The translations under genes and the position numbers were made by a program. Below the pieces are notes generated by a model. The model searched no databases and was not told where the DNA came from. It was given only the letters and a program-made list of their open reading frames with translations. A DNA stretch of 64,000 nucleotides from Adineta vaga. Taxonomy: Eukaryota > Animalia > Rotifera. Location of the stretch: the NCBI GenBank assembly GCA_021613535.1, contig CP075493.1, positions 12,524,001-12,588,000 of the forward strand, written 5' to 3'. Positions 1 through 64,000 of the stretch are shown piece after piece; within the stretch, counting starts at the first letter, position 1; each line of letters begins with the position of its first letter.

Positions 1-1328
1 TGTTCGTATCTCATATACATCCTTCATGCATCTTTAATCTTTCTCTTCCTATAAAACATATATCCGCCTTTTCTTTACTTTTCTTCTTATACACCTATGT
101 TACATTACGCCCTAACTGATCATCAATGAAAACAGACATCCTTTTTATTTTATAATTGTATTGTTGCAAATATATTTATCATAGTCTTATTTCTTTTTCA
201 TTATCTTTCCCTTTTCATGTTCTTTCGTTGGTCATGTTGGAGAAGCATACAAACATATGCTTTCCCTGAAACAATGCGAAATGTGATATGAAAATTTTAA
301 AAAAAGAGGTGAAGTTCTATTAACGTTAAAGTTTCTTCTACATAAATTCATCATAATTATTTTATTGTTGTTGTGTTTCTTTTCAAATGAAATTCATCGG
401 TATCGTTACTTGTGTTGAAAAAAGTCTTTGTATCACTATGGTTTTCATACAAAAATATCTTATAAATAAGAATATTACGGAGTCAAATAGAAATATTTCC
501 TTATTAATATAGCATATATAAATTCATGGTTTTCTAGTTATTACTCATGTGTATGCTGTCAGTGGCGATAAATATATAACCTTTCATGGTAATATCAGAG
601 TATTGTCATTTCTTTCTCTTTTTCTTCTCATATAAACTTAGGTTCTATTGTGAGACAGCTCAATTAACAACTATACAGTAGACGAAGCATTCTGTAGCCT
701 GTACAAAAATTGATTGAATGAATACGAGTCTGTTGTTCATATGAACAAAACATAATCCAACGATTCAATAGTGCACCGAAGAAGAGGAAAAAACGAACAG
801 GCGCTTGATGTACAACTCTATTGATATGTTGTGCAAGCGTTATAGGTATGATATTATTGCTACATCTACTCTCCTCACCGGCTCATCTTTCGTCACGACA
901 AAGAAATTTACTGTAGAATTATCTCAGCTGAACAAGTTACTCATTTTGCTTTTACTTCTTTTTTTACATGAAGCTTATGTTCTTCAATAAGTAATATAAA
1001 GTTGTTCATTCAACAATTTTCCAAGTCGAAATTTTTCCTTTCAAACTTATTTCTATTTTGTTTTCGATACATAAGTTTTAATAAATCGAGCTTAGAAAGT
1101 ATTTTGATGAAATGCAATTTAAAAGAATGTGACTTCTCATAACCCAGTGCGTTCTAATTCATATAGTCGATAATCATTGAAGAGGATTTCAACTTCTGCA
1201 GATAAAAGATTAGAAATATCTTAAGAAAATCACGACAAAAATAGCAATGACTAACATAGAATAACAAGTCATTATATGTATCTGCGTACATACAGATAGT
1301 TTAGATTAAAATTTTAATCAAGAGAAAC

Positions 1329-1400
1329 CAGGGGCGTCCCGAGGGTGGGGGGCGCGTGGGGCGTAACGCCCCCTGCTTTTGACACCTCGGGACACCCCTG
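1329..1400. mobile_element. 72-bp hAT-like MITE with 16-bp TIRs and 8-bp TSD
   Basis: GC-rich island. CAGGGGCGTCCCGAGG (1329-1344) and CCTCGGGACACCCCTG (1385-1400) are inverted repeats (15/16). Perfect direct repeat AGAGAAAC at 1321-1328 and 1401-1408. CAGGG termini plus an 8-bp TSD are typical of hAT. Confidence 0.85.
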
Positions 1401-1877
1401 AGAGAAACTAATGTTTTTCATAAAAGAAACGAGAAAGTACTTGTATCTAAATAGAGACAAGCATCCCAATGCTTCTTTACAGGAATACTATAAAATAAGA
1501 AATCACCCGCTGAGATAGAATTTTCAAAATTCATTCAAAGTCATATAATCCACATCCTTGAGATTTTATAGAGACGATTTGTTCTACACCTGAAATATCT
1601 TCTCCCTTTGTCGTTGTGTTTGTCAGTACTTTCTTCCCACCTTCTCTTTTTCACAACTATGATTTCTATAATAAGTCAGCTCTATTTTAATCCAGTTTGT
1701 CTTGTAATTGAATTTGTTTTCAAAAAGATGACAAGCAACAAGAAATGAATTAGATTTATGCGCTTGACAGCCGACAGTGATTATTAAATATCATTCTGGA
1801 CAAAAAAATATTGTGAAGGAAGTAAGAATTGTTTATCAATTGCTCGAAAGTATTTCTATCTTCTCATTCATTTCCAA

Positions 1878-2816
1878 ATGGACTACATTCAAACATTACT
1901 ATCAGTACAGACATATTTATACAGAATAGGTGGTGCAATTATAATGGTTGCTGGATGTCTAGGTTGTATACTCAGTTTAATGATCTTTTCAAAGAAGAAT
2001 CTTCGCAAAAATCCATGTTCATTCTATTTTATTGCATACAATTTTGCCAATCTTTGTCAACTCACTCTGTTACATATGCAGGGAATGTTAGCATACGGTT
2101 ACAATATCGATATTTCAACATTCAACGACAGTTTCTGTCGTATCGATTGTTATCTAGGATATGTATTGGATATTCTCAGTCCATTCTATCTGATTTTAGC
2201 CTCCATCGATCGAATGGTAGTCACTTCACGAGATGCACGTATACGCCGTCATAGTACTCATCAACTTGCCTATAAATGCATTATTGGTGGCTCAATAGTT
2301 TGGATGTTAATCCACTCTCATACATTAATCTTCTTCAAAGTGATCGAGATCATCCCAAGCTATTTGGTATGTTATTCCGATTCGGATATATATTTAGCAT
2401 TTATAAATTACTATGCATTAGTGAAAACTATCTTAATACCAATAGTGATGCTGATTTGTGAAGTATTTACAATAAAACATATTCGATCAACACATCGTGC
2501 GACAGTTGTTCCTGCATCAACAGCAATTGGTAGTGCTGTCAATCCTACACGTTCGAAAGATCGTCAACTAATTGGAATTGTATTGATCAATGCCAGTGTT
2601 TACATCATTTTTACTTTGGTTCCTGTCAGCGTTGCTATCTACAAACAAATCACTCAGTATCAAAACAAAAGTTTCGTAGAAAGTCAAGTGGATTCATTTT
2701 TGACAAGTATAAGCTCTTTTATTTATTTTATACCAATTTCAGTTAGTTTTTACATTAATTTAATTGTATCGAAAACCTTTCGAAATGAAATGAAAAATAT
2801 ACTTTTGTGCAATTAG
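1878..2816 (+). CDS. Intronless rhodopsin-like 7TM GPCR (orphan)
   Basis: 312 aa with seven hydrophobic segments; LRKNPCSFYF in ICL1, FCR in ECL1, LASIDR (DRY-like), FYINLIVSKTFR helix-8 end. Confidence 0.85.
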   Translation: MDYIQTLLSVQTYLYRIGGAIIMVAGCLGCILSLMIFSKKNLRKNPCSFYFIAYNFANLCQLTLLHMQGMLAYGYNIDISTFNDSFCRIDCYLGYVLDILSPFYLILASIDRMVVTSRDARIRRHSTHQLAYKCIIGGSIVWMLIHSHTLIFFKVIEIIPSYLVCYSDSDIYLAFINYYALVKTILIPIVMLICEVFTIKHIRSTHRATVVPASTAIGSAVNPTRSKDRQLIGIVLINASVYIIFTLVPVSVAIYKQITQYQNKSFVESQVDSFLTSISSFIYFIPISVSFYINLIVSKTFRNEMKNILLCN

Positions 2817-3117
2817 ACTATTCCATATTCAAGAGAACATTATAATCAGTCCAATATTGTGACCTCTCCTTGCTTGCTTTTGTCATCAAAGTTTCAATAA
2901 AAACTGCCAATATAATTATTCTGCCTTTTTTCTTACTTGTTCTTATAATAAATGGAATATAAGCAATACAAGAATATCAGTCTTAGATAAAAATTGATTC
3001 TCTTTCAAATAAGTATTTTAGGGAAATAATATAATGAAAATACGCAACTGTAACTTAAATTTACATGAAAGCAATACAAAAAATATCACATTTATGTCTT
3101 GTTGGTTTTCAAGATGA

Positions 3118-6100
3118 TTATTGATTAACATAAATGAAGCGTTGAATTTTCGGTGGGAATTTTCGTCTTTTTGTTCGTTGATTCCATCTTCTTCTTCGTC
3201 TTTGTATTCTTTCTAATTGATCGCTTGCTGGATCAATACCAAAACAGTATTTCAATGTATCCATCACAACAAGAAATAAGCAAACACATCCAACCATAAA
3301 ATAGCATAGATAACCAAATGATTTTGTTGTGATTTCATGTGCAACTAAACTTCGTGAAGCAATTTCACAATGATTACCAGAATAACTTGTACTCAAACAT
3401 TCACATTTATAGTCACCCACTAATGGTCGACATACACCATGGTTGGCACATGTGACATTTTCACAGTGATTTACTTTTCTTTCACAATGATCCCCAGTCC
3501 ATCCTGATTGACATACACATTCAAATGTGGTATTCGATGTTTCATTACAATGACCTAAACAAAGAAAAAACAATATTTTCTTCTTCTACTTCTAGAAATC
3601 ATAGTGTGTATGTCTATGAAAATACGATACCATTATTCCAACATGAATTTGACTGACATGGCCGATGATCATATTCACATGTTGAACCATTGAAACCTTG
3701 TAAACATAAACAAGAATAAGTATTCATGATGGTATTGTTATCGACACAAGTGCCATTATTTTGACAAGGTTTCATCATTTGACAAGGTGTTGCTGAGATG
3801 TTACATGTGAGACCAATTGTATGTTGTCCACAAACTGGTACAGTCATGATTGATGAAGGTGGATGACCTGAGACAATAGAGAAAATATATATTAAAGAGA
3901 GGAGAAAGAGGTATTAGATAGGTGAACCTGTAGTTAATTGATTCGTTGATGATATCATAGTCGAACTATGTTGTGTTGTTATTGTTGTTTCTATAGAGAA
4001 GATAAAAGTGAGATACAATTTGAAGTGACAATGAAGAGAGAGATGGAATACCTGTTTGATAAAGTAGACTGGTTCCTTTTGATGAGAGTGTTGATTGTAC
4101 GAGAAGCGATGTATGCTCGACTACATAGGTTAACTTACGGTATGGTAAAAAGCGATGAGAATTTACCTTTGATGACGGACGTGGAGAATGATTGTTGTGT
4201 TGTAGACTGATCTAAAGAAAAACATTTGACGATTCTCAAACTATTTCGTTTTTCAAAAGCTCTGCTATATTTACCACATAAGCGTGTTGATAACAGAAAT
4301 TTTTGAATACGACTATTATTTTGATCAACAGCATATATATTTCCGCGCGCATCAAAAGCCATACTCCATGGAAATAATAATTCCTTTGAAGCTGAATTAC
4401 TTCCATTACATCCAATAATACATTGTAAAGTGTTTTGTGTCGATCTAACAATGCGATGATTATTACTATCGACTATATACAAATACTTGTTGCCATCTAG
4501 CACAACACTACTCGGACCATTTAATAATGGACTACTTGCTCTCGCTGTGCCATTGGTGTTCCCTGATTGAAAAACTAAAACTCGATCGTTTCCATAATCT
4601 GCAACGTATAAATCAAAGTTGTCATCAACAAAGATTCCAGCAGGATTCGAGAGTCTATCCAATGTCGAATCAGCAGTGCCATTTCCAGCAACAATCGCCG
4701 ATATATCTACACGAGGATCATCTAACCATCGTTTTATGACTTTATGAAGTGAATGGACGGAGCAGTACAGTGAATTACTGATATCAACAAAGAGACCGTA
4801 ACAGGATGAATTAACATACATGACCGGAATGCTAATATTTGTATCTACCTTCCATTGATCGACAGTGCCATTCGCATCACCATTATCAACCAAAATATCA
4901 CCATTAATGGCAACATAAACAGATGCTGGAATAGTGATGTTGTTCAATATTTCTTTTCTTATGTTCATAGAACCGTTCAGCGAAATTTGTATTTTGCTTG
5001 TTTGTCCATGAAAAATATAGATTGAATTATTTTTCGTAATAAACATTGCGACAGGTTTGCTATCAGTCGTAGTTATATTCATAAATGTTGTTGTATTCTC
5101 ATCCCAAGTTGCGAATGAACAAAACCTCAGTTGGTTGTATGATGTCGCTACAAAATAGAAAAACAGAAGTAGACGTGCATCGTTTGAAGATTCTGATAAA
5201 AGAAGCGTTTACCTTTTGTATTATTCAACAGGAGAAACTTTTCAACTAAACTACTATTCCGATCAGTAACATAAATGTTTCCACGAACATCAAAAGCCAT
5301 ACTCCAAGGATATGATAATACACTTGAACCTGAACTAATTTCATAACAACCAATAATGCATCGAAATTCGTTTTGAGTCGATCTGATAACTCGATGATTA
5401 TTACTGTCGACTATATACAAATATTTGTTGCCATCTAACACAACACTACTTGGACCATTTAATAATGGACTACTTGCTCTCGTTGTGCCATTGATGTTCC
5501 CTGATTGAAAAACTAAAACTCGATCGTTTCCATAATCTGCAACGTACAATTCAAAGTTGTCATCAACAAAGATTCCAGCAGGATTCGAGAGTCTGTCCAA
5601 TGTCGAATCAGCAGTGCCATTTCCAGCAACAATTGCCGATATATCTACACGAGGATCATCTAACCATCGTTTTATGACTTTATGAAGCGAATGGACGGAA
5701 CAGTACAGTGAATTACTGATATCAACAAAGAGACCATAACAGGATGAATTAACATACATGACCGGAATGCTAGTATTTGTATGTACCGTCCATTGATCGA
5801 CAGTGCCATTCGCATCACCATTATCAACCAAAATGTCATCGTTTAAAGTAATAAATATAGAGGTTGGATGGATCAGACTATTGTATGTTATGCTCTGTGC
5901 ATGAATAGATTTATTAAACCAGATTTGTAGTAGACTATTGTTACGATCAACGGCATAGACGGAGTCAACTTGATCCAAAAAAATACCATAAAGTTCGCTA
6001 CTGCCTGTATCATTAATTCTGAAACTAACTTGTGTCGGATTCCAAGTAGCTAATGAATTCAAGTTTGGTTCATTATATGAGATATCTAAACAATAACAGT

Positions 6101-55230: not shown

Positions 55231-58200
55231 TTATGTTTGTTTTGACATATAATCATCAAGCCATGCACTAGTATCTCGTCCAACAGTATTCATCCATCGA
55301 ATATTTGCTTTGATCTTTTCAATAGATGAATGGAAAGATCGTTCGGCTGTCGATAAATCAGCTGTAGTGGCCATAAATCGTTGAACTATATCCAAATCTT
55401 CTTGTGTATTCATATATTCCAAAACATTTTCAACAATATCCGACAGAGTAAAACTTACACTACCAAATTTATTCACAAGTTCCTTCCATTGTTGACTGAC
55501 AAAACGCCAAGCAAGTTTTTGTCCATTAGGTTGAAGACGAATATTACTAATAAATCTTGATGCATCTTGAAGACGAATATAATCATTAGCTATTGTTGTA
55601 TTGAGCAATTGTTCGAGAAGAGTAATATTTGATGTACATGTAAGTGCATAACCATAACGATTCTTTTCAACTTGATCATTGCTTTCTTTATATAATTCTC
55701 TCATATGTTCATAATCAGCAACTGTTCCATATTTAATTCCTTGACAATAAGTCACAGTTCGAATATCAGGAACAATCGGATAAGCTGTTGAATTGGAACG
55801 CCAATTACGATATTGTTTTACAATATCGCTAATACATACATTATAACCATTAGCACAAAGATCTCCAATGACCATAGCACGTAATCGACGTGTAAAATAA
55901 TCTAATGATTGTAAATCTGCATCTGCGGAGAAAATCGATGCATTATATTGTTTTTCTTCAAGTTTTTGAATGAATTTTTGCATATTCTGATAACTAGTAT
56001 TTCCTTGATTTTGACTTAACATAACTAATGGATAATAAATATTGATTGAAAAAGTATAGTATGGTACATAATCAATTTCATTCATAAGATAAGTTGAGAG
56101 ATTTAATGCAACTGTTACATTTAGATCTGCTGATCGAGCTAAATTGAATGCATCATCGATCAATTGTGCACGTGTTACACTAGTAAAAGATGTACGATTA
56201 TTTTTCAATTCTTTAATAATCGAATGCCAATTATCATTATCATAATTAACACGATAGAATCCAAATTCATCTACATTAAATACAATAAAATCGTTACGTG
56301 ATGCAACATTAGACAAAGTACGAGTTTGATTTGGAGAAAGCCATTGAACAGATGAGATACCTGATACAGTCATATAATTGAATGGAATATACCATTGAAA
56401 TGAATTGATATTAGTTGAAGTTTGACTTAATTCGAAAGGATCGAGAAAATATCGTTTCTGTGAAAGTGAAATAGAATTATCGGTGTTATTACGTGTAACA
56501 GTAAGGAGAGGATATCCTTCTTGAAGAGTCCAAGTATCCATGATCATTTTAACAGTATAATTATTAAGTGCAGATGCATTGACAACACCATTAAGGAAGG
56601 TCCATAATTGATCTTGAATAGCATTACCATATTGAAAATGATTCAAATAATTGCTGATGCCCTGAAAGAACGTTGATTGACTGAGAACAGTATAGATCAT
56701 TCGAAGAATAGATGCACCCTTATTATCTGAAGAACAGAGAAAAATGACATAGAAGAAGATATTTATCGAAGAATATTACATGAAATAGCATCGAATATTG
56801 AATTGATTTCATCTGGATGCGTAACTTCGATGCTAATTGGATGCGTAGAAAAGAGACTATCCAAGACCAAAGCTGGATGAACAGTTTCTATTAGAAGTAA
56901 AGGAAATAATAATCAATATTCCTGCGTTTTTTTTTCTTGAATACTTACCACTGACAAATGTATCAAAGGATTGAAATTCTGGATTTGAATGATTCAGACC
57001 AAGTACTTCCACCCACGAAGCAAAACCTTCATTTAACCTTGATAAAGAAATGAATTTTTTCTTAAATCAGTAACTATTCTCTATTTACCAAAGATCATTC
57101 CACCATACAGGTGAAACAATATCTCCAAACCATTGATGTGCTAATTCATGTGCGACAACTTCACCAACCCGTCGTTTATCTGTTAGAGTACCAGTGATAT
57201 TGCTGTAGAGTAAAGCCGTCTCACGATATGTAATTAAACCCCAATTTTCCATGCCACCTAGAGAAGATATAAACATTCAATGATTGATCATGGCATACCA
57301 TACGAATGATACTTACCAATAGGAAAATCAGGTATAGCAAACTGATCACATTTACTTAAGGGATATGAAATATTGTAAGATTCTTCGTAGTATGGAATTA
57401 CTTTCAAACTAACGTCACGAGCAAAGTCACCGTTACCTCTACCTATTGCTTCGGGTCGTCCACAAATATTAACTGTAATATTGTTTGCAGTTACACCAGT
57501 AGCACATTCAAAATCAGTAAGAACAAATGCAACAAGATATGTTGACATTGGTGGTGTTTCTTCAAAACGCGTTAGTAAACGACCATTGGCTGTCGGAACA
57601 GGTTGACTTGCGCCAAGCATCGCACCATTGGATCGAACCATAGTAAAACTCGAATGATGTGTAATGGAAATGTTAAATTTAGCTTTAAAACCTGGTTCAT
57701 CAAAACATGGAAATGCCGTACGTGCTAATGTTGGCTAAAAGAAAGAAAGAAACAAATTAGAGATATATGTAAAAAAAACAAGGGTATTTTATAGACTTGC
57801 CTGCATGTGAGTAGAAGCAATATTATGTACGATAGTTTCATTTGTACTTGTATTTGTCGTTTTATATTGACTTAAATAGAATCCAGCCATATCACGACTC
57901 AATTCAGTTGAGTAAGAAGCCTCAAACTGATAATCTTCACTAACCATACATCGTTCACGTAGACGGCAGAGAAGTATTTCCGATGCTGATATCCATGTCC
58001 AATCAATGATAAGATTGTTCAATGTATTCAAACGTTTCAATGTCACAACAGATATTTGTAATTGTTTTGTATGAATTCGAAATTCATTTGTTGATTGATT
58101 ACAACGAACAATAATACGTGTATAACCCGTCAAACGTGTGTCAGGTTCAGCATTATTTGAATAGATTGTTTGAAGACGTACATCAAAATTAAGATCATAT

Positions 58201-61200
58201 TGAGATGGAATCCAATTGAATGGAAGACGAATAGTATTTGTTCGATTGTTAAACCATTCGATTAGATTAGGTTTTGCATTGTCAATCCATTGAATATTAC
58301 TACGAATACGTTCAATTGTCGATTGAAATCGGACCATATTCTACATAAATCAATGAATATATTTCATAAAATTGATGATATACTTACAGTATCAGTCATT
58401 TGTTCAAAGAATTGTTCAAATTCACTTAATTGTTGTCTAGTATTGAATCTTGCAGTTGCATCTTTAATAAGATCAACAAAACTAAGTGATCCACCGAATT
58501 GATCAAATAATTGTTGCCATCGAGAACGTACAAATGTCCAACATTCCGTTTCAGCAATAAGATTTCGACAAATAGCTCGTACTCCAGAAAGAGCATCCTG
58601 TGGTCGAATGATATTTAATTGTGAATTGATGTGAATTTCGAGTAAATATCGAATCAATTCTGTATCACGTGTACAAGCTAATGCTGATTGTATTCGTGCT
58701 TTTTCTTGTGGATCATTCGATTGTTGATATTGATTAAGAAGATACTGAAATTCAATTCGACTACCACGACGAACAACAGTACAATAAACAACCGAACGAT
58801 AGTTTGCTTCAATAGAATTATTCAATGGTTGATTAAACCATTCATCAAATAATGATCGAGCACGTTGAATACAATCATCAACATTTTGTCGACATGCCAT
58901 CGATATGATTAGATCACGGTGAAGTCCATCAAGCCATTTTTCAGTTGTATTTGTTGATTGTTGCCAACCAAGTTTTGTGTAAATTGGTGAAATTAAATCG
59001 ATAACATACGATTGAAATTGTTCATATAGAGTAATATCTGAACTTTTCGATGCTATCATTTGTTCAATATAAGAAAGACCAGCAATAATACGTTCCCAAA
59101 CAATATATGCATCTTCAGAATGAACATAACTAATTAGATTGAATACGAGTGATGTTTCTAGAATATCTATGGAAGAGAAAAAAAAGTGAAAATATAGAAT
59201 ATCGAGAAAACGATTTCATTGTATATTACTCGCGCGTGCTAAGTTGAATGCATCATCGATAAGACCTGCTCGTTCTATGACAGTGAAACTTTTATAATTC
59301 GATTTCAATTGTTCACTAATCATCTTCCAATTTTGCCGATCATAATTCGTACGAAAGAATCCCAATAGATTTGGATTTGCTAAAAGCCATTGATTTGATT
59401 GTGCATTGATATTTAACGACACATTGCTTTTAGGTTGATTAAACCAGATAAGATCTGATGTCAATGCTGATGAAGATTTGAATTGTAATGGAATATACCA
59501 AAGATATTTATAAGGCGATGGAGCTGGTTGTGCTTCCGAATCGAATAGGAACTGACGTTGAGTTATTGTTACTATTCCAGTAGAATAGTCACGTGTAACT
59601 TCAATATATGGATAACCCATTTGATTTGTCCATGTATTCATAATGGTATCAAGTGTTGTATTATTTGGTAATTGAATATTATCTGTAGACATTTGTTCAC
59701 CTAAGGCTTGCCAAAGATCAGTCTGTGTTGCAGTTGAATATAAATGACGTTGAAGATATCGTGTAACTCCTTTGTTAAATGTTGCAGTAGACATGAAATT
59801 ACTCATCATTCGAAGTAATGATGATCCTTTCGAGTAAGTGATCGTATCAAAAATACTTGTTAATTCTTCGTTACGTATTAGTTTCATATTAACTGGATGT
59901 GAAAATGATATTGCATCATCTTGCATAACAGCAAGCCATCGTTGAGCAATGAATTGTTCATATAAATCCCATTCTGGATGAATTTTATCTGTTCCAACAA
60001 ATTCCATCCATTTAGCAAAACCTTCATTGAGCCATAAATCATCCCACCATGCAGGTGAAACAAGATTACCAAACCATTGATGAGCAAGCTAAGTATAAGA
60101 AGAAACTCCATCGAATAATGAAAATATATCTCTTTAAGTTTTTTCTTCTTACTTCATGAGCAATCACTGCTGCTACACTTTGTTTATTCGATGATGACGA
60201 TGTTCGATTATTATAGAAAAGTCGTGTTTCACGATATAGAATACAGCCAAAATTTTCCATTGCACCTATAAAAACAAATAGAATAAGTAACAAAAGAATG
60301 TTCTCAATTATTTACCAGCATCGAAATCAGGTATAGCAATATGATCACATTTTGATAAGGGATAACCGATGTCATATTGTACTTCAAAATCTCGTATACT
60401 TTTTGTTGCTACTTCAAGTGCGTAAGTCAACGAATCTTTTTTCTCCGATTGAGCACATACACTTGTTGTAATATTTCCAAAACGTCCCGTATTATTTTGT
60501 GTTAGGCAATCAAAATCTGCAATGACTAATGCTAACAAATATGAACTCATTGGTACAGTATTTTGAAATTGTGTCAATACCCAACCGTTTGGTTGATTGT
60601 TACTACTTTCAATGGGCATATTACTCCAAACTCGATATTGTTGTTCATGTTCGACATTGACTGTAAAAGTTGCTTTTAACTTAGGTTCATCAAAACATGG
60701 TAGAGCTCGTCGTGCTGCAATAGGTTCCATTTGCGAAGCAACTAAATATCGTCGAACTTTATCTGCTGAACGTACATATGAACTGAGATAAAAACCATTC
60801 GTATCACTTCGTAGTTCACCTGTATATTTCAATGTTAAATTTATTTGTTCATTGACTTCAAGTAGTCGATTGAGTGTAATAGTGAAAAAGTCTAAATCTT
60901 CGTTGAATGCTGTTGAAATTACTGATATACCACCGGTAATTTCGATTGGTTCTTCTATTTTAATAAAACGTTTATGTAAAACAATACGATTAGTTCTACG
61001 TGTGACATTGAGTTGTATACGAACTCGTCCATCAAAACTTGAAGAACGAATGTTTTCATTAGTGATATTTAAATATGGTTTAACATAGAGATCATAATGA
61101 ATTGGAACAATATCCGAAGGTAAACGATTGTTGACAGTCACTGATTGATTATTTGAACGAAAGTAAGTTATAATCGAATCAAGATTTTTTGTATTCCATT

Positions 61201-64000
61201 CAACGTTTGCATGAATTCGATCAATCGACAATTGAAATTGACGATAAGCTGTACCTAAATAAAAACAAAATATACATATATGTTTAAAGATAAACAAATC
61301 ATCTTGATTATTTACCTTTATCAATAATTGAATTAGCAAACGATAAAAATTCGTCTCGTTGTCCATTTGTTACAAATCGAGTTGATAAAGCTTCAATAAT
61401 CTCTCCTAATTTATTATCTGCTTTGCCCCATTTTTGAAAAAGTTTTGGCCAATTCTCACGAACCCAATTCCAGGCAATTTGATTTGCTCGTGGCGAACGA
61501 GCTACATTGGCAATCGAACGCGATGAATCTTGATCACGAATAATTGAATGATTGCTTAAATGTTGATCAAGAAACCAAACAATCAATGATGGATTTTCTG
61601 TGCAAGCAAGACCTTCAAGAAGATTGATTGTTTCACCAGCAACCGATTCTTGTCCAAGACGAGACCATAAGAAATCGAATACAGATTGTGAACCTTCACG
61701 TACGACAGTACAATAAACAATTGAACGTAGATTAGCAGGAATTTGATTGAGAGTAGGATTTAAATACCAACGACGATATGCACTACGTGCATTTTCAATA
61801 CAATGGAGATGACGATAACGACAAACAGCTGATACAATATCTGGTTGTAATAATGCTTGTAGCCAATCTATTGATTGATCGACTGGCATCCAGCCGATTT
61901 TGTTATAAAGAGGAAGAAGAAGATCAAGAAAATAATTTTGTATATCAATAAAAATATTTTTATTAGCAAGTAATTCTTCTTGTTGATGCATTGCTAAAAG
62001 TGCTGCCGTCCATGGAACAAAATCCGTTTCTCGTTTCAAATATTGAATAAGTTCGTAACCATCGGTTGCGTTCATAAAACCTGCACGTGATATAGCAAAT
62101 GTATCATCGATCAGAGCACCACGATTAATATTTGGAATGCGTGTGTGATCTGTTTGAAGTTGATTAATAATAAGACGAAAATTTTGTGGATCATACTTCG
62201 CACGATAAATGCCCATATATTGTGGATTAGCTAAGATCCAATCGGTATTTCCTGTGTTAATATTCAATGTTCTAGATGTATCATTCAACCAGAAGAGTTC
62301 ACTTTCAGCCGATTTCTAAGTAAAGAATTGAAGAAGAAAAAAAAAGATATACAAGATCGTAATTGAATCTATTTACTGTATTCATAGTTTGATAAATATA
62401 TTTAAATGGAATCCACCATTTATCTTCTTTTGTTGTTGATGAAAGAATACTAAATGGTCGTTGATTAATAACCATACGAGCTCCATTTGTATCATAAATT
62501 CGATTAATTTCAACCATTGGATAACCTGCTTGCCGTATCCAACCATTCATAATTCGTTCAACATCGATAGTATTACCCGTAGCTTCGCTGAGAGATTTCC
62601 ATAAATCTTCTTGTGTTGCTGAACCATAACTATACGTTTTTAAATATGTTTGAATTCCACGTTGAAATATTTCTGCACCTAAAAACATTGACATCATCCG
62701 AATGACTGCTGCTCCTTTACTATAAGTAATGGAATCATACAATTGAAATATATCGGCTGGATTTGTTGATTGAATACTAATGGGCCGTGAAGTGGGCAAT
62801 GAATCAGCTTCTATAAATGCAAAGATTGTATCAACAATAAATTGTTCATCTTGTTTCCATGATGGTTCAAGAGAATCAGATGCTAATGTTTCCATATAAG
62901 TCGCAAATCCTTCCTTTAACCATCTATATATAAATCAACAAACATCAAATGAGCAATAACAATAAAATATCATTAAAACTTACAATTCACCCCACCAAGC
63001 GGGAGAAACTAGATTACCAAACCATTGATGAGCTATTTCATGATATATTAAGTTAGTAATACGTTGTTTTAATGATGCTGGAACTGTTTTTTCATCGAAA
63101 AATAATCCGATTTCCGTATAGATTAACAAACCTAGAACGACAAACAATTCCTCAGTAGATTCAATTGATATGAAAACAAGAGATAATATTTTACCATAGT
63201 TTTCCATCGCACCACCATCAAAATCAGGAACAGCAAAATGTTCGATTTTTGTCAATGGATAAGTAATATTAAAGTATTGATTGAAAAACTCTAAAGTTCT
63301 ACAAGTAACATCATCAGCATAGGCCAACTGTGGAAGAATATCAGCACGTCCACATACTCTCGATCTAATATTTGTCGAATTAATAAGACGATATGGTCGA
63401 CAAGCGAAATCAGATGTTGGTGCCATAATCATTGCTAAGATAAATGTCGACATTTTTAATGTTGGATTAAAATGTGAAACTGTTTGACCATTTTTTAATG
63501 TTTCAATACGTTCAATATCTCCATTGGACCATACACTATAGGAAGAATCGTGTCGAATACTAATCTGAAAAATAGCTTTCCGAGCTGGTTCATCAAAACA
63601 TGGAAGAACACTTCGTGCATAAGTGGGTTCCATCTGAGATGTCATAAAAGTACGCTCTTGTCCGTTGATATCAACATAATCACTGATGTAGAGGCCATGC
63701 AAATCACGAGTGATAACACCTTGATAGACAATACTGATTGTATAACTGTTCTCTATTTGAAAATTCGATGAAAAATTCATTATCATAAATTCATTGTAAT
63801 TATCATAGGTCGACGAATGAAATGTAGGTAGTGAATTCGATGATGAATTAACAATATGTATACTTGAATTATCAATAATTAAGTTTGTCATATGAAGAAA
63901 TATTTGATTTGTTGTCTTAACACACTTAAAAGTAAAGAAAAGTTCACCTACAATAGATAAAATTGTTAAGTAACTCTTCAGATCAAACTTTATATTTACC
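55231..64000 (-). CDS. Giant multi-exon gene with at least three tandem M1 (aminopeptidase N-like) modules; 5' end lies beyond the window
   Basis: Three sets of G[A/G]MEN, HE[I/L]AH, WLxEG, Y[S/N]KG and ERAP1_C-like helices. Module junctions lie inside open exons with no stop; all introns checked splice in frame. Confidence 0.85.

Follow-up and report, generated by a model that had tools for sequence, protein, structure and literature searches.

Does one gene of the bdelloid rotifer Adineta vaga encode several complete M1 aminopeptidases in a single chain, or does the DNA in question hold separate genes placed head to tail? The question was raised by a 64,000-nucleotide (nt) stretch of contig 1 (positions 12,524,001-12,588,000; hereafter the window), in which a first-pass annotation had described a polyprotein-like chain of at least three M1 peptidase modules between position 55231 and the window end. 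To our knowledge, the characterised M1 aminopeptidases (APN, APA, ERAP1/2, IRAP, PSA) are one-module chains. The results presented here make it highly probable that the locus is a single gene for a type II membrane ecto-aminopeptidase with three complete APN/APA-type M1 modules head to tail. The architecture, the intact zinc-binding and catalytic motifs, their conservation and the purifying selection acting on them were demonstrated by sequence comparison, and comparative genomics marks the three-module chain as an old gene under selection and not as an annotation artefact.

The A. vaga genome (100.8 megabases in 6 contigs) has a G+C content of ~32% and introns of ~50-60 nt. For the gene model, GT/AG pairs were enumerated between the coding stretches and an intron was kept if it restored both frame and homology; the next 10 kilobases (kb) past the window end were fetched as well (L003). 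A single minus-strand gene was obtained, which starts with an ATG at 64336, 336 nt past the window end (L003 2336), and ends with a stop at 55231-55233. The spliced model consists of 15 exons and 14 introns of 47-66 nt, with a coding sequence of 8,295 nt that specifies 2,764 amino acids (aa) with no internal stop. The terminal stop that had been placed at 55231 is indeed the only one in the 2,764-codon model, and an AATAAA motif lies ~85 nt downstream of it. Thirteen of the introns are of the GT-AG type and one, with a strong donor context (CAG|GCAAGT), is GC-AG (57800-57735). This spliced model served for translation, motif coordinates, module alignments, trees and substitution rates; the databases were searched one exon at a time.

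The Pfam profiles Peptidase_M1_N, Peptidase_M1 and ERAP1_C matched three times in this order on the minus strand from 55231 to the window end, all above the curated cut-offs. The three modules span approximately aa 88-960, 972-1855 and 1863-2764, and each comprises an N-domain, a thermolysin-like catalytic domain and an ERAP1_C domain. The only hydrophobic segment in the 2,764 residues (aa 21-52, Kyte-Doolittle values up to 3.0) is followed by a Ser/Thr-rich stalk. The predicted N-terminus is thus a short tail with a single signal-anchor helix (type II) and lacks a cleavable signal peptide; this anchor is kept in a second copy of the gene on contig 4. The description "at least three modules, start unknown" was rejected on these grounds: the chain has exactly three modules, and the sequence past the window end supplies both the start and the anchor. 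A genome-wide scan with ERAP1_C for a fourth module or further copies gave three matches here and the same number at the ohnolog on contig 4; M1 loci elsewhere in the genome seem to be single. The M1 loci of this genome come in pairs on contigs 1/4, 2/5 and 3/6, of which only the 1/4 pair is triple; such a pairing fits three pairs of ohnologous chromosomes. Searching the Protein Data Bank (PDB) with one exon returned 4KX7 (aminopeptidase A) and many APN entries as the best sequence matches (E ~1e-64 to 1e-66), followed by ERAP1, PSA and IRAP. APN and APA, rather than LTA4H or bacterial PepN, are therefore the closest relatives among solved structures.

All exons lie on the minus strand. Exon 1 (64336-64000, of which only base 64000 is inside the window; 64001-64336 correspond to L003 2001-2336) encodes Met1 and the cytoplasmic tail, then the transmembrane anchor (aa 24-47) and the Ser/Thr stalk, and finally the strand with which the module 1 N-domain begins (RIP, aa 88). 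Module 1 continues through exon 2 (63195-63947) with the remaining N-domain, including SQMEP at 63639-63625, and the start of the catalytic domain with GAMEN at 63213-63199, and through exon 3 (62984-63131) with the zinc motif HEIAH at 63042-63028. Exon 4 (62377-62923) completes the catalytic domain and supplies both its third zinc ligand Glu417 (62913-62911) and the catalytic Tyr480 (62724-62722), and exon 5 (61316-62315) covers profile positions 1-299 of 318 of the module 1 ERAP1_C domain. The N-domain of module 2, with SQMEP at 60736-60722, is encoded in exon 6, which goes on into the catalytic domain. Exon 7 (60153-60265) contains GAMEN and the first half of the module 2 zinc motif, which is divided by intron 7 (HE|LAH), and exon 8 (59230-60088) contains LAH, Glu1301, Tyr1364, the end of the catalytic domain and the beginning of ERAP1_C, the domain that is continued in exon 9 (58388-59166). 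The N-domain of module 3 begins in exon 10, which runs as far as THMQ, and is completed in exon 11 (57317-57734), where the catalytic domain also starts. GGMEN and HELAH (57150-57136) follow in exon 12 (57089-57257), the third zinc ligand Glu2204 (57030-57028) in exon 13 (56949-57037), and a further part of the catalytic domain in exon 14 (56780-56887), the last base of which is the first base of the Tyr2267 codon. Exon 15 (55231-56726) encodes the remainder of the catalytic domain and a complete ERAP1_C (profile positions 1-318) up to the stop.

Each of the three modules retains the residues expected of an active M1 peptidase, as had been noticed in the first pass: GxMEN, HExxH..E, the catalytic Tyr and the SQMEP, SQMEP and THMQP motifs are all present in the spliced model. 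GxMEN takes the form GAMEN in modules 1 and 2 and GGMEN in module 3. The zinc motifs, with the Glu 18 residues further on, read HEIAH..E417, HELAH..E1301 and HELAH..E2204 and can also be read in the contig-4 copy, and the catalytic Tyr480, Tyr1364 and Tyr2267 each lie within Y-x-KG. Splicing is needed to complete two of these motifs, HELAH in module 2 and, across intron 14, the Tyr codon in module 3. Module 3 is the most divergent of the three, with GGMEN, THMQP, 20 N-x-S/T sequons out of 40 in the whole protein and the longest stem branch in the trees described below. It also holds the GC-AG intron (intron 10, 57735-57800, 66 nt). In the contig-4 ohnolog, and likewise in all further bdelloid open reading frames (ORFs) seen, the homologous intron opens with GT; these ORFs read on past THMQ into Val.

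The two joints between modules also speak for a single chain. The introns that had been described immediately upstream of them were recovered with the same borders, intron 5 at 61315-61255 (61 nt, phase 1) and intron 9 at 58387-58341 (47 nt, phase 0), both GT-AG. In the exon that follows each of them, the last ~35 ERAP1_C residues of the preceding module, a linker of 7-11 residues and the next N-domain, which opens at R-L-P, are read in one frame with no stop. Exon 6 (60316-61254) carries joint 1: positions 61254-61127 encode the last helices of the module 1 C-domain and an 11-residue linker, and the module 2 N-domain begins at 61126 (RLP). Exon 10 (57801-58340) carries joint 2: positions 58340-58230 encode the last helices of the module 2 C-domain and a 7-residue linker with an N-R-T sequon, and the module 3 N-domain begins at 58229 (RLP). 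The claim that each junction sits within one exon was thus borne out by direct reading, and it was further backed by conservation in the ohnolog and in other bdelloids.

An in-frame stop lies behind both donors (61308 and 58364) and would be met if the introns were retained. The locus might accordingly be read as three tandem genes, or as a gene with regular short isoforms, with transcripts that end at these stops and with promoters and starts of their own for modules 2 and 3. The fact that a comparable Trichogramma locus is split by one annotation and fused by another indicates that tandem M1 models can be ambiguous. However, a stop right behind the donor is explained by the donor context GTAAAT(A/G)A in an AT-rich genome, and since the last C-domain helices sit in the joint exon, a transcript ending at an intronic stop would truncate a conserved domain. 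The ERAP1_C match of the exon upstream of each joint ends at profile position 299-302 of 318, whereas module 3, with no intron there, reaches 318; positions 300-318, encoded together with the next module, would be dropped. Moreover, neither module 2 nor module 3 carries a separate anchor, and module 2 lacks a signal as well as any Met across its first ~130 residues (none from joint 1 to residue 1104). A Met does lie where module 3 begins, at the beginning of exon 10, but it is not conserved in relatives. There is no intergenic space, and at least 5 loci and ~28 ORFs share the splice sites and the open frame. Separate genes or regular short isoforms are therefore extremely improbable.

Alternatively, a single precursor could be cleaved in the linkers, so that module 1 would stay membrane-bound and modules 2 and 3 would be set free in soluble form, as the term "polyprotein-like" would imply. 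In favour of this, both linkers are short, differ in sequence between copies and are presumably exposed, and only module 1 bears an anchor. No dibasic or R-x-x-R (furin-type) site was present in either linker in any copy read, although another protease could still act there, and the N-R-T sequon found in the joint-2 linker of most copies would tend to shield it. Tandem-domain ectopeptidases such as somatic ACE and carboxypeptidase D remain intact. The polyprotein label thus found no support in the linkers, and processing of this kind is improbable.

The single three-module gene is conserved among bdelloids. In the contig-4 ohnolog (13,887,703-13,896,923) all 15 exons are collinear with 56-86% aa identity, and each joint exon aligns in one piece. 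Complete 15-exon triples also lie on two contigs (L008 and L009) that come from an ENA sample of another bdelloid. Joint 1 was recovered in ~28 bdelloid genomic ORFs by a word search with exon 6 as query, with 60-81% identity and with 97-100% of the exon covered including the joint; the linker varies in sequence and length but always preserves the frame. The relatives recovered under a species name belong to Rotaria. Joint 2 is present in ~7 further bdelloid genomic ORFs, in which THMQ is invariant. In a gene model of Rotaria magnacalcarata (P0246) the end of ERAP1_C is spliced to the same joint-1 exon over an intron of ~60 nt. The position of intron 5 is common to the contig-4 copy, L008, L009 and a Rotaria contig (L007), and that of intron 9 to the contig-4 copy, L008 and L009. 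Every locus keeps the splice sites at the two joints, while the introns themselves vary in sequence and length. On this comparative evidence, the continuity of the joints is far beyond chance. L009, a contig-4-type copy (sample ERZ26165376), has lost intron 7, so that exons 7 and 8 abut (L009 7339-7349), and has probably lost intron 1 as well (L009 11139-11140). Intron content thus differs between orthologs while the joint introns stay.

Selection was estimated by the Nei-Gojobori method against the three other full-length genes. The ratio of nonsynonymous to synonymous substitution rates (dN/dS) lay at 0.08-0.30 in each of the modules and at 0.22-0.49 in the joints, values that are only approximate because synonymous sites are saturated (dS ~1 or more). 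These ratios point to purifying selection on all three modules, of similar strength. They also bear on the possibility that the protein is one chain in which at least one module, despite intact motifs, is a non-catalytic binding or scaffold unit. Non-peptidase M1 homologues exist, and the divergence of module 3 would be in line with such a role. Yet none of the four full-length genes has lost a zinc ligand, the Glu of GxMEN or the catalytic Tyr in any of its modules, and no module stands apart in the selection acting on it; a scaffold module is very unlikely. The first-pass view of an old, selected concatemer agrees with the low dN/dS of each module, the collinear triples in the ohnolog, L008 and L009, joint 1 in the Rotaria model and the grouping of the sequences by module.

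This grouping was obtained from three module trees, a FastTree tree of 92 rows, an IQ-TREE LG+G4 tree of 51 rows and a quick mixture-model run (IQ-TREE LG+C20+F+G4) of 30 rows. In all three the rotifer modules formed one clade, with support of 97 and the topology (m3,(m1,m2)). Each module clade contains all four genes, arranged as the contig-1 gene with L008 and the contig-4 gene with L009, and the triplication therefore predates the split of the ohnologs. Concerted evolution could mimic such a clade of rotifer modules. The modules are, however, about as distant from each other as from M1 proteins of other phyla, which makes recent homogenisation unlikely. The trees suggest that two internal tandem duplications took place in a bdelloid ancestor, in the order module 3 versus modules 1 and 2, before the duplication that gave the contig-1/contig-4 pair.

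The rotifer clade is separate from the module clades of Hymenoptera, nematodes, molluscs and echinoderms. Module-by-module orthology with the hymenopteran triples, hinted at by best-match positions, was contradicted by the trees. In the other lineages the modules of one protein mostly group together, and such clustering within lineages would imply separate duplications or concerted evolution. Since the clade of rotifer modules rests on a short branch (~0.1), an origin of the rotifer triple independent of the hymenopteran one is judged likely, not proven.

The statement of the first-pass annotation that M1 peptidases have one catalytic module per chain holds for the characterised enzymes but not for the sequence databases. 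In an exhaustive HMMER search of 1.84 billion cluster representatives with exon 6 as query, the best 150 proteins included ~45 that exceeded 1,300 aa and contained 2-5 matched stretches. According to a profile built from the rotifer modules, these chains consist of complete modules with 2-15 residues between them. Three-module proteins were found in Hymenoptera (Eretmocerus, Anthophora, Prorops and Polistes), and two-module proteins in nematodes (Necator, C. brenneri, Syphacia and Panagrellus), molluscs (Haliotis and Solemya), a starfish (Acanthaster XP_022081851.1), flies, beetles, a springtail, an ostracod and a mite. A Logan contig of 6,261 nt (L010, run SRR24189489) contains an uninterrupted ORF of 1,820 aa on the plus strand (44-5506) with two complete M1 modules and flanks resembling untranslated regions, and looks like a full-length mRNA. 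The bdelloid triple is thus not unique: chains of 2-5 M1 modules are common among invertebrate predictions, seemingly of repeated origin, and the architecture is already present in public databases, where it has seemingly gone unstudied. We take T16G12.1 to be the two-module ortholog of C. elegans. RNA interference against this M1 gene is mentioned as reducing brood size in a passage of PMC6857582 that cites Althoff et al. (2014). Literature searches on tandem or multi-domain M1 aminopeptidases, on rotifer M1 enzymes and on T16G12.1 returned no description of the architecture.

Two of the database entries deserve separate mention. Within one 90%-identity cluster, Trichogramma pretiosum is represented by a two-module model of 1,926 aa (P0055/P0281) and T. 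kaykai by single-module models of ~960 aa with adjacent locus tags (P0282-P0284), and annotation pipelines seem to disagree on whether tandem M1 units are to be fused or split. In Musca autumnalis P0038 (1,866 aa) the two modules are nearly identical, with terminal branches of 0.06-0.08, which would reflect either a very recent duplication within the chain or an artefact of assembly or annotation.

How does the rotifer protein compare with known systems? Mammalian APN and APA have one module per chain and form dimers. With these enzymes (CD13 and ENPEP, e.g. PDB 4FYQ and 4KX7) the rotifer protein shares the type II anchor and stalk, the domain order, GAMEN, HExxH-X18-E and the catalytic Tyr, but it has three modules in series on one anchor. 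The hymenopteran triples of Polistes fuscatus (XP_043498883.1, "putative aminopeptidase-2", 2,623 aa), Eretmocerus (KAJ8681953.1, 2,733 aa) and Anthophora (CAK9796737.1, 2,686 aa) likewise have three head-to-tail modules, linkers of ~3-11 residues and a similar length; they differ in forming a module clade of their own and are known as gene predictions. The proteins of Necator (XP_064063856.1, 1,814 aa), C. brenneri (G0MKG9, 1,888 aa) and Haliotis (XP_067653450.1) resemble the rotifer protein in their tandem modules and short linkers but have two modules instead of three, and in the nematode proteins the modules are old paralogs, as in the rotifer. Ecto-metallopeptidases of other families and folds have also arisen by internal tandem duplication, namely somatic ACE (M2, two catalytic domains) and carboxypeptidase D (M14, three domains), the units of which differ in specificity. 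These are type I anchored, and one of the carboxypeptidase D domains, the third, is inactive; the rotifer protein keeps the catalytic residues in all three modules and is predicted to have a type II anchor.

The first-pass suggestion that the modules may combine different specificities found partial support. The motif preceding P-x-x-A-R, invariant by module in all bdelloid copies examined, reads SQMEP in the first two modules and THMQP in the third. Its Glu/Gln position presumably contacts the free amino group of the substrate, as in APN and ERAP1 structures. Modules 1 and 2 with Glu and module 3 with Gln may thus differ in their preference for the N-terminal residue. Translation would yield one chain that enters the membrane through the single N-terminal anchor, is heavily N-glycosylated at its sequons and displays three active sites side by side outside the cell, acting on extracellular peptides. 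The most plausible setting, by analogy with APNs of other animals, would be a surface for digestion or absorption.

Several points weigh against one gene for a three-headed ectoenzyme. The activity of the enzyme, its topology in the membrane, its tissue and its substrate preferences are inferred from sequence or by analogy, and the single transcript and the single chain are likewise read from genomic DNA. The HMMER representative search and the word searches returned exon-sized ORFs and partial Rotaria models but no full-length bdelloid protein, and to this are added the saturated synonymous sites and the short branch of the rotifer clade noted above.

More tentatively, it is conceivable, although doubtful at present, that multiplication of M1 modules within a chain occurred independently many times (in bdelloids, Hymenoptera, nematodes, molluscs, echinoderms and others) and that the bdelloid triple is an anciently fixed three-headed ectoenzyme with stably divided specificities (Glu versus Gln), an M1 counterpart of two-domain somatic ACE. 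In any case the locus raises the question of why the covalent linkage of several aminopeptidase sites on one anchor is favoured again and again; stoichiometric co-delivery, broadened specificity and sequential trimming are candidate answers. For genome annotation it follows that tandem M1 units should not be split automatically into separate genes.

Outside the M1 gene, the sequence fetched past the window end contains, ~4.3-6.2 kb beyond that end (L003 6288-8228, plus strand), a gene with the Pfam domain AtuA (acyclic terpene utilisation, E 2e-126) and an AtuA ferredoxin-like domain. As the AtuA family is mostly bacterial and fungal, a horizontal acquisition of this gene in the rotifer is possible.

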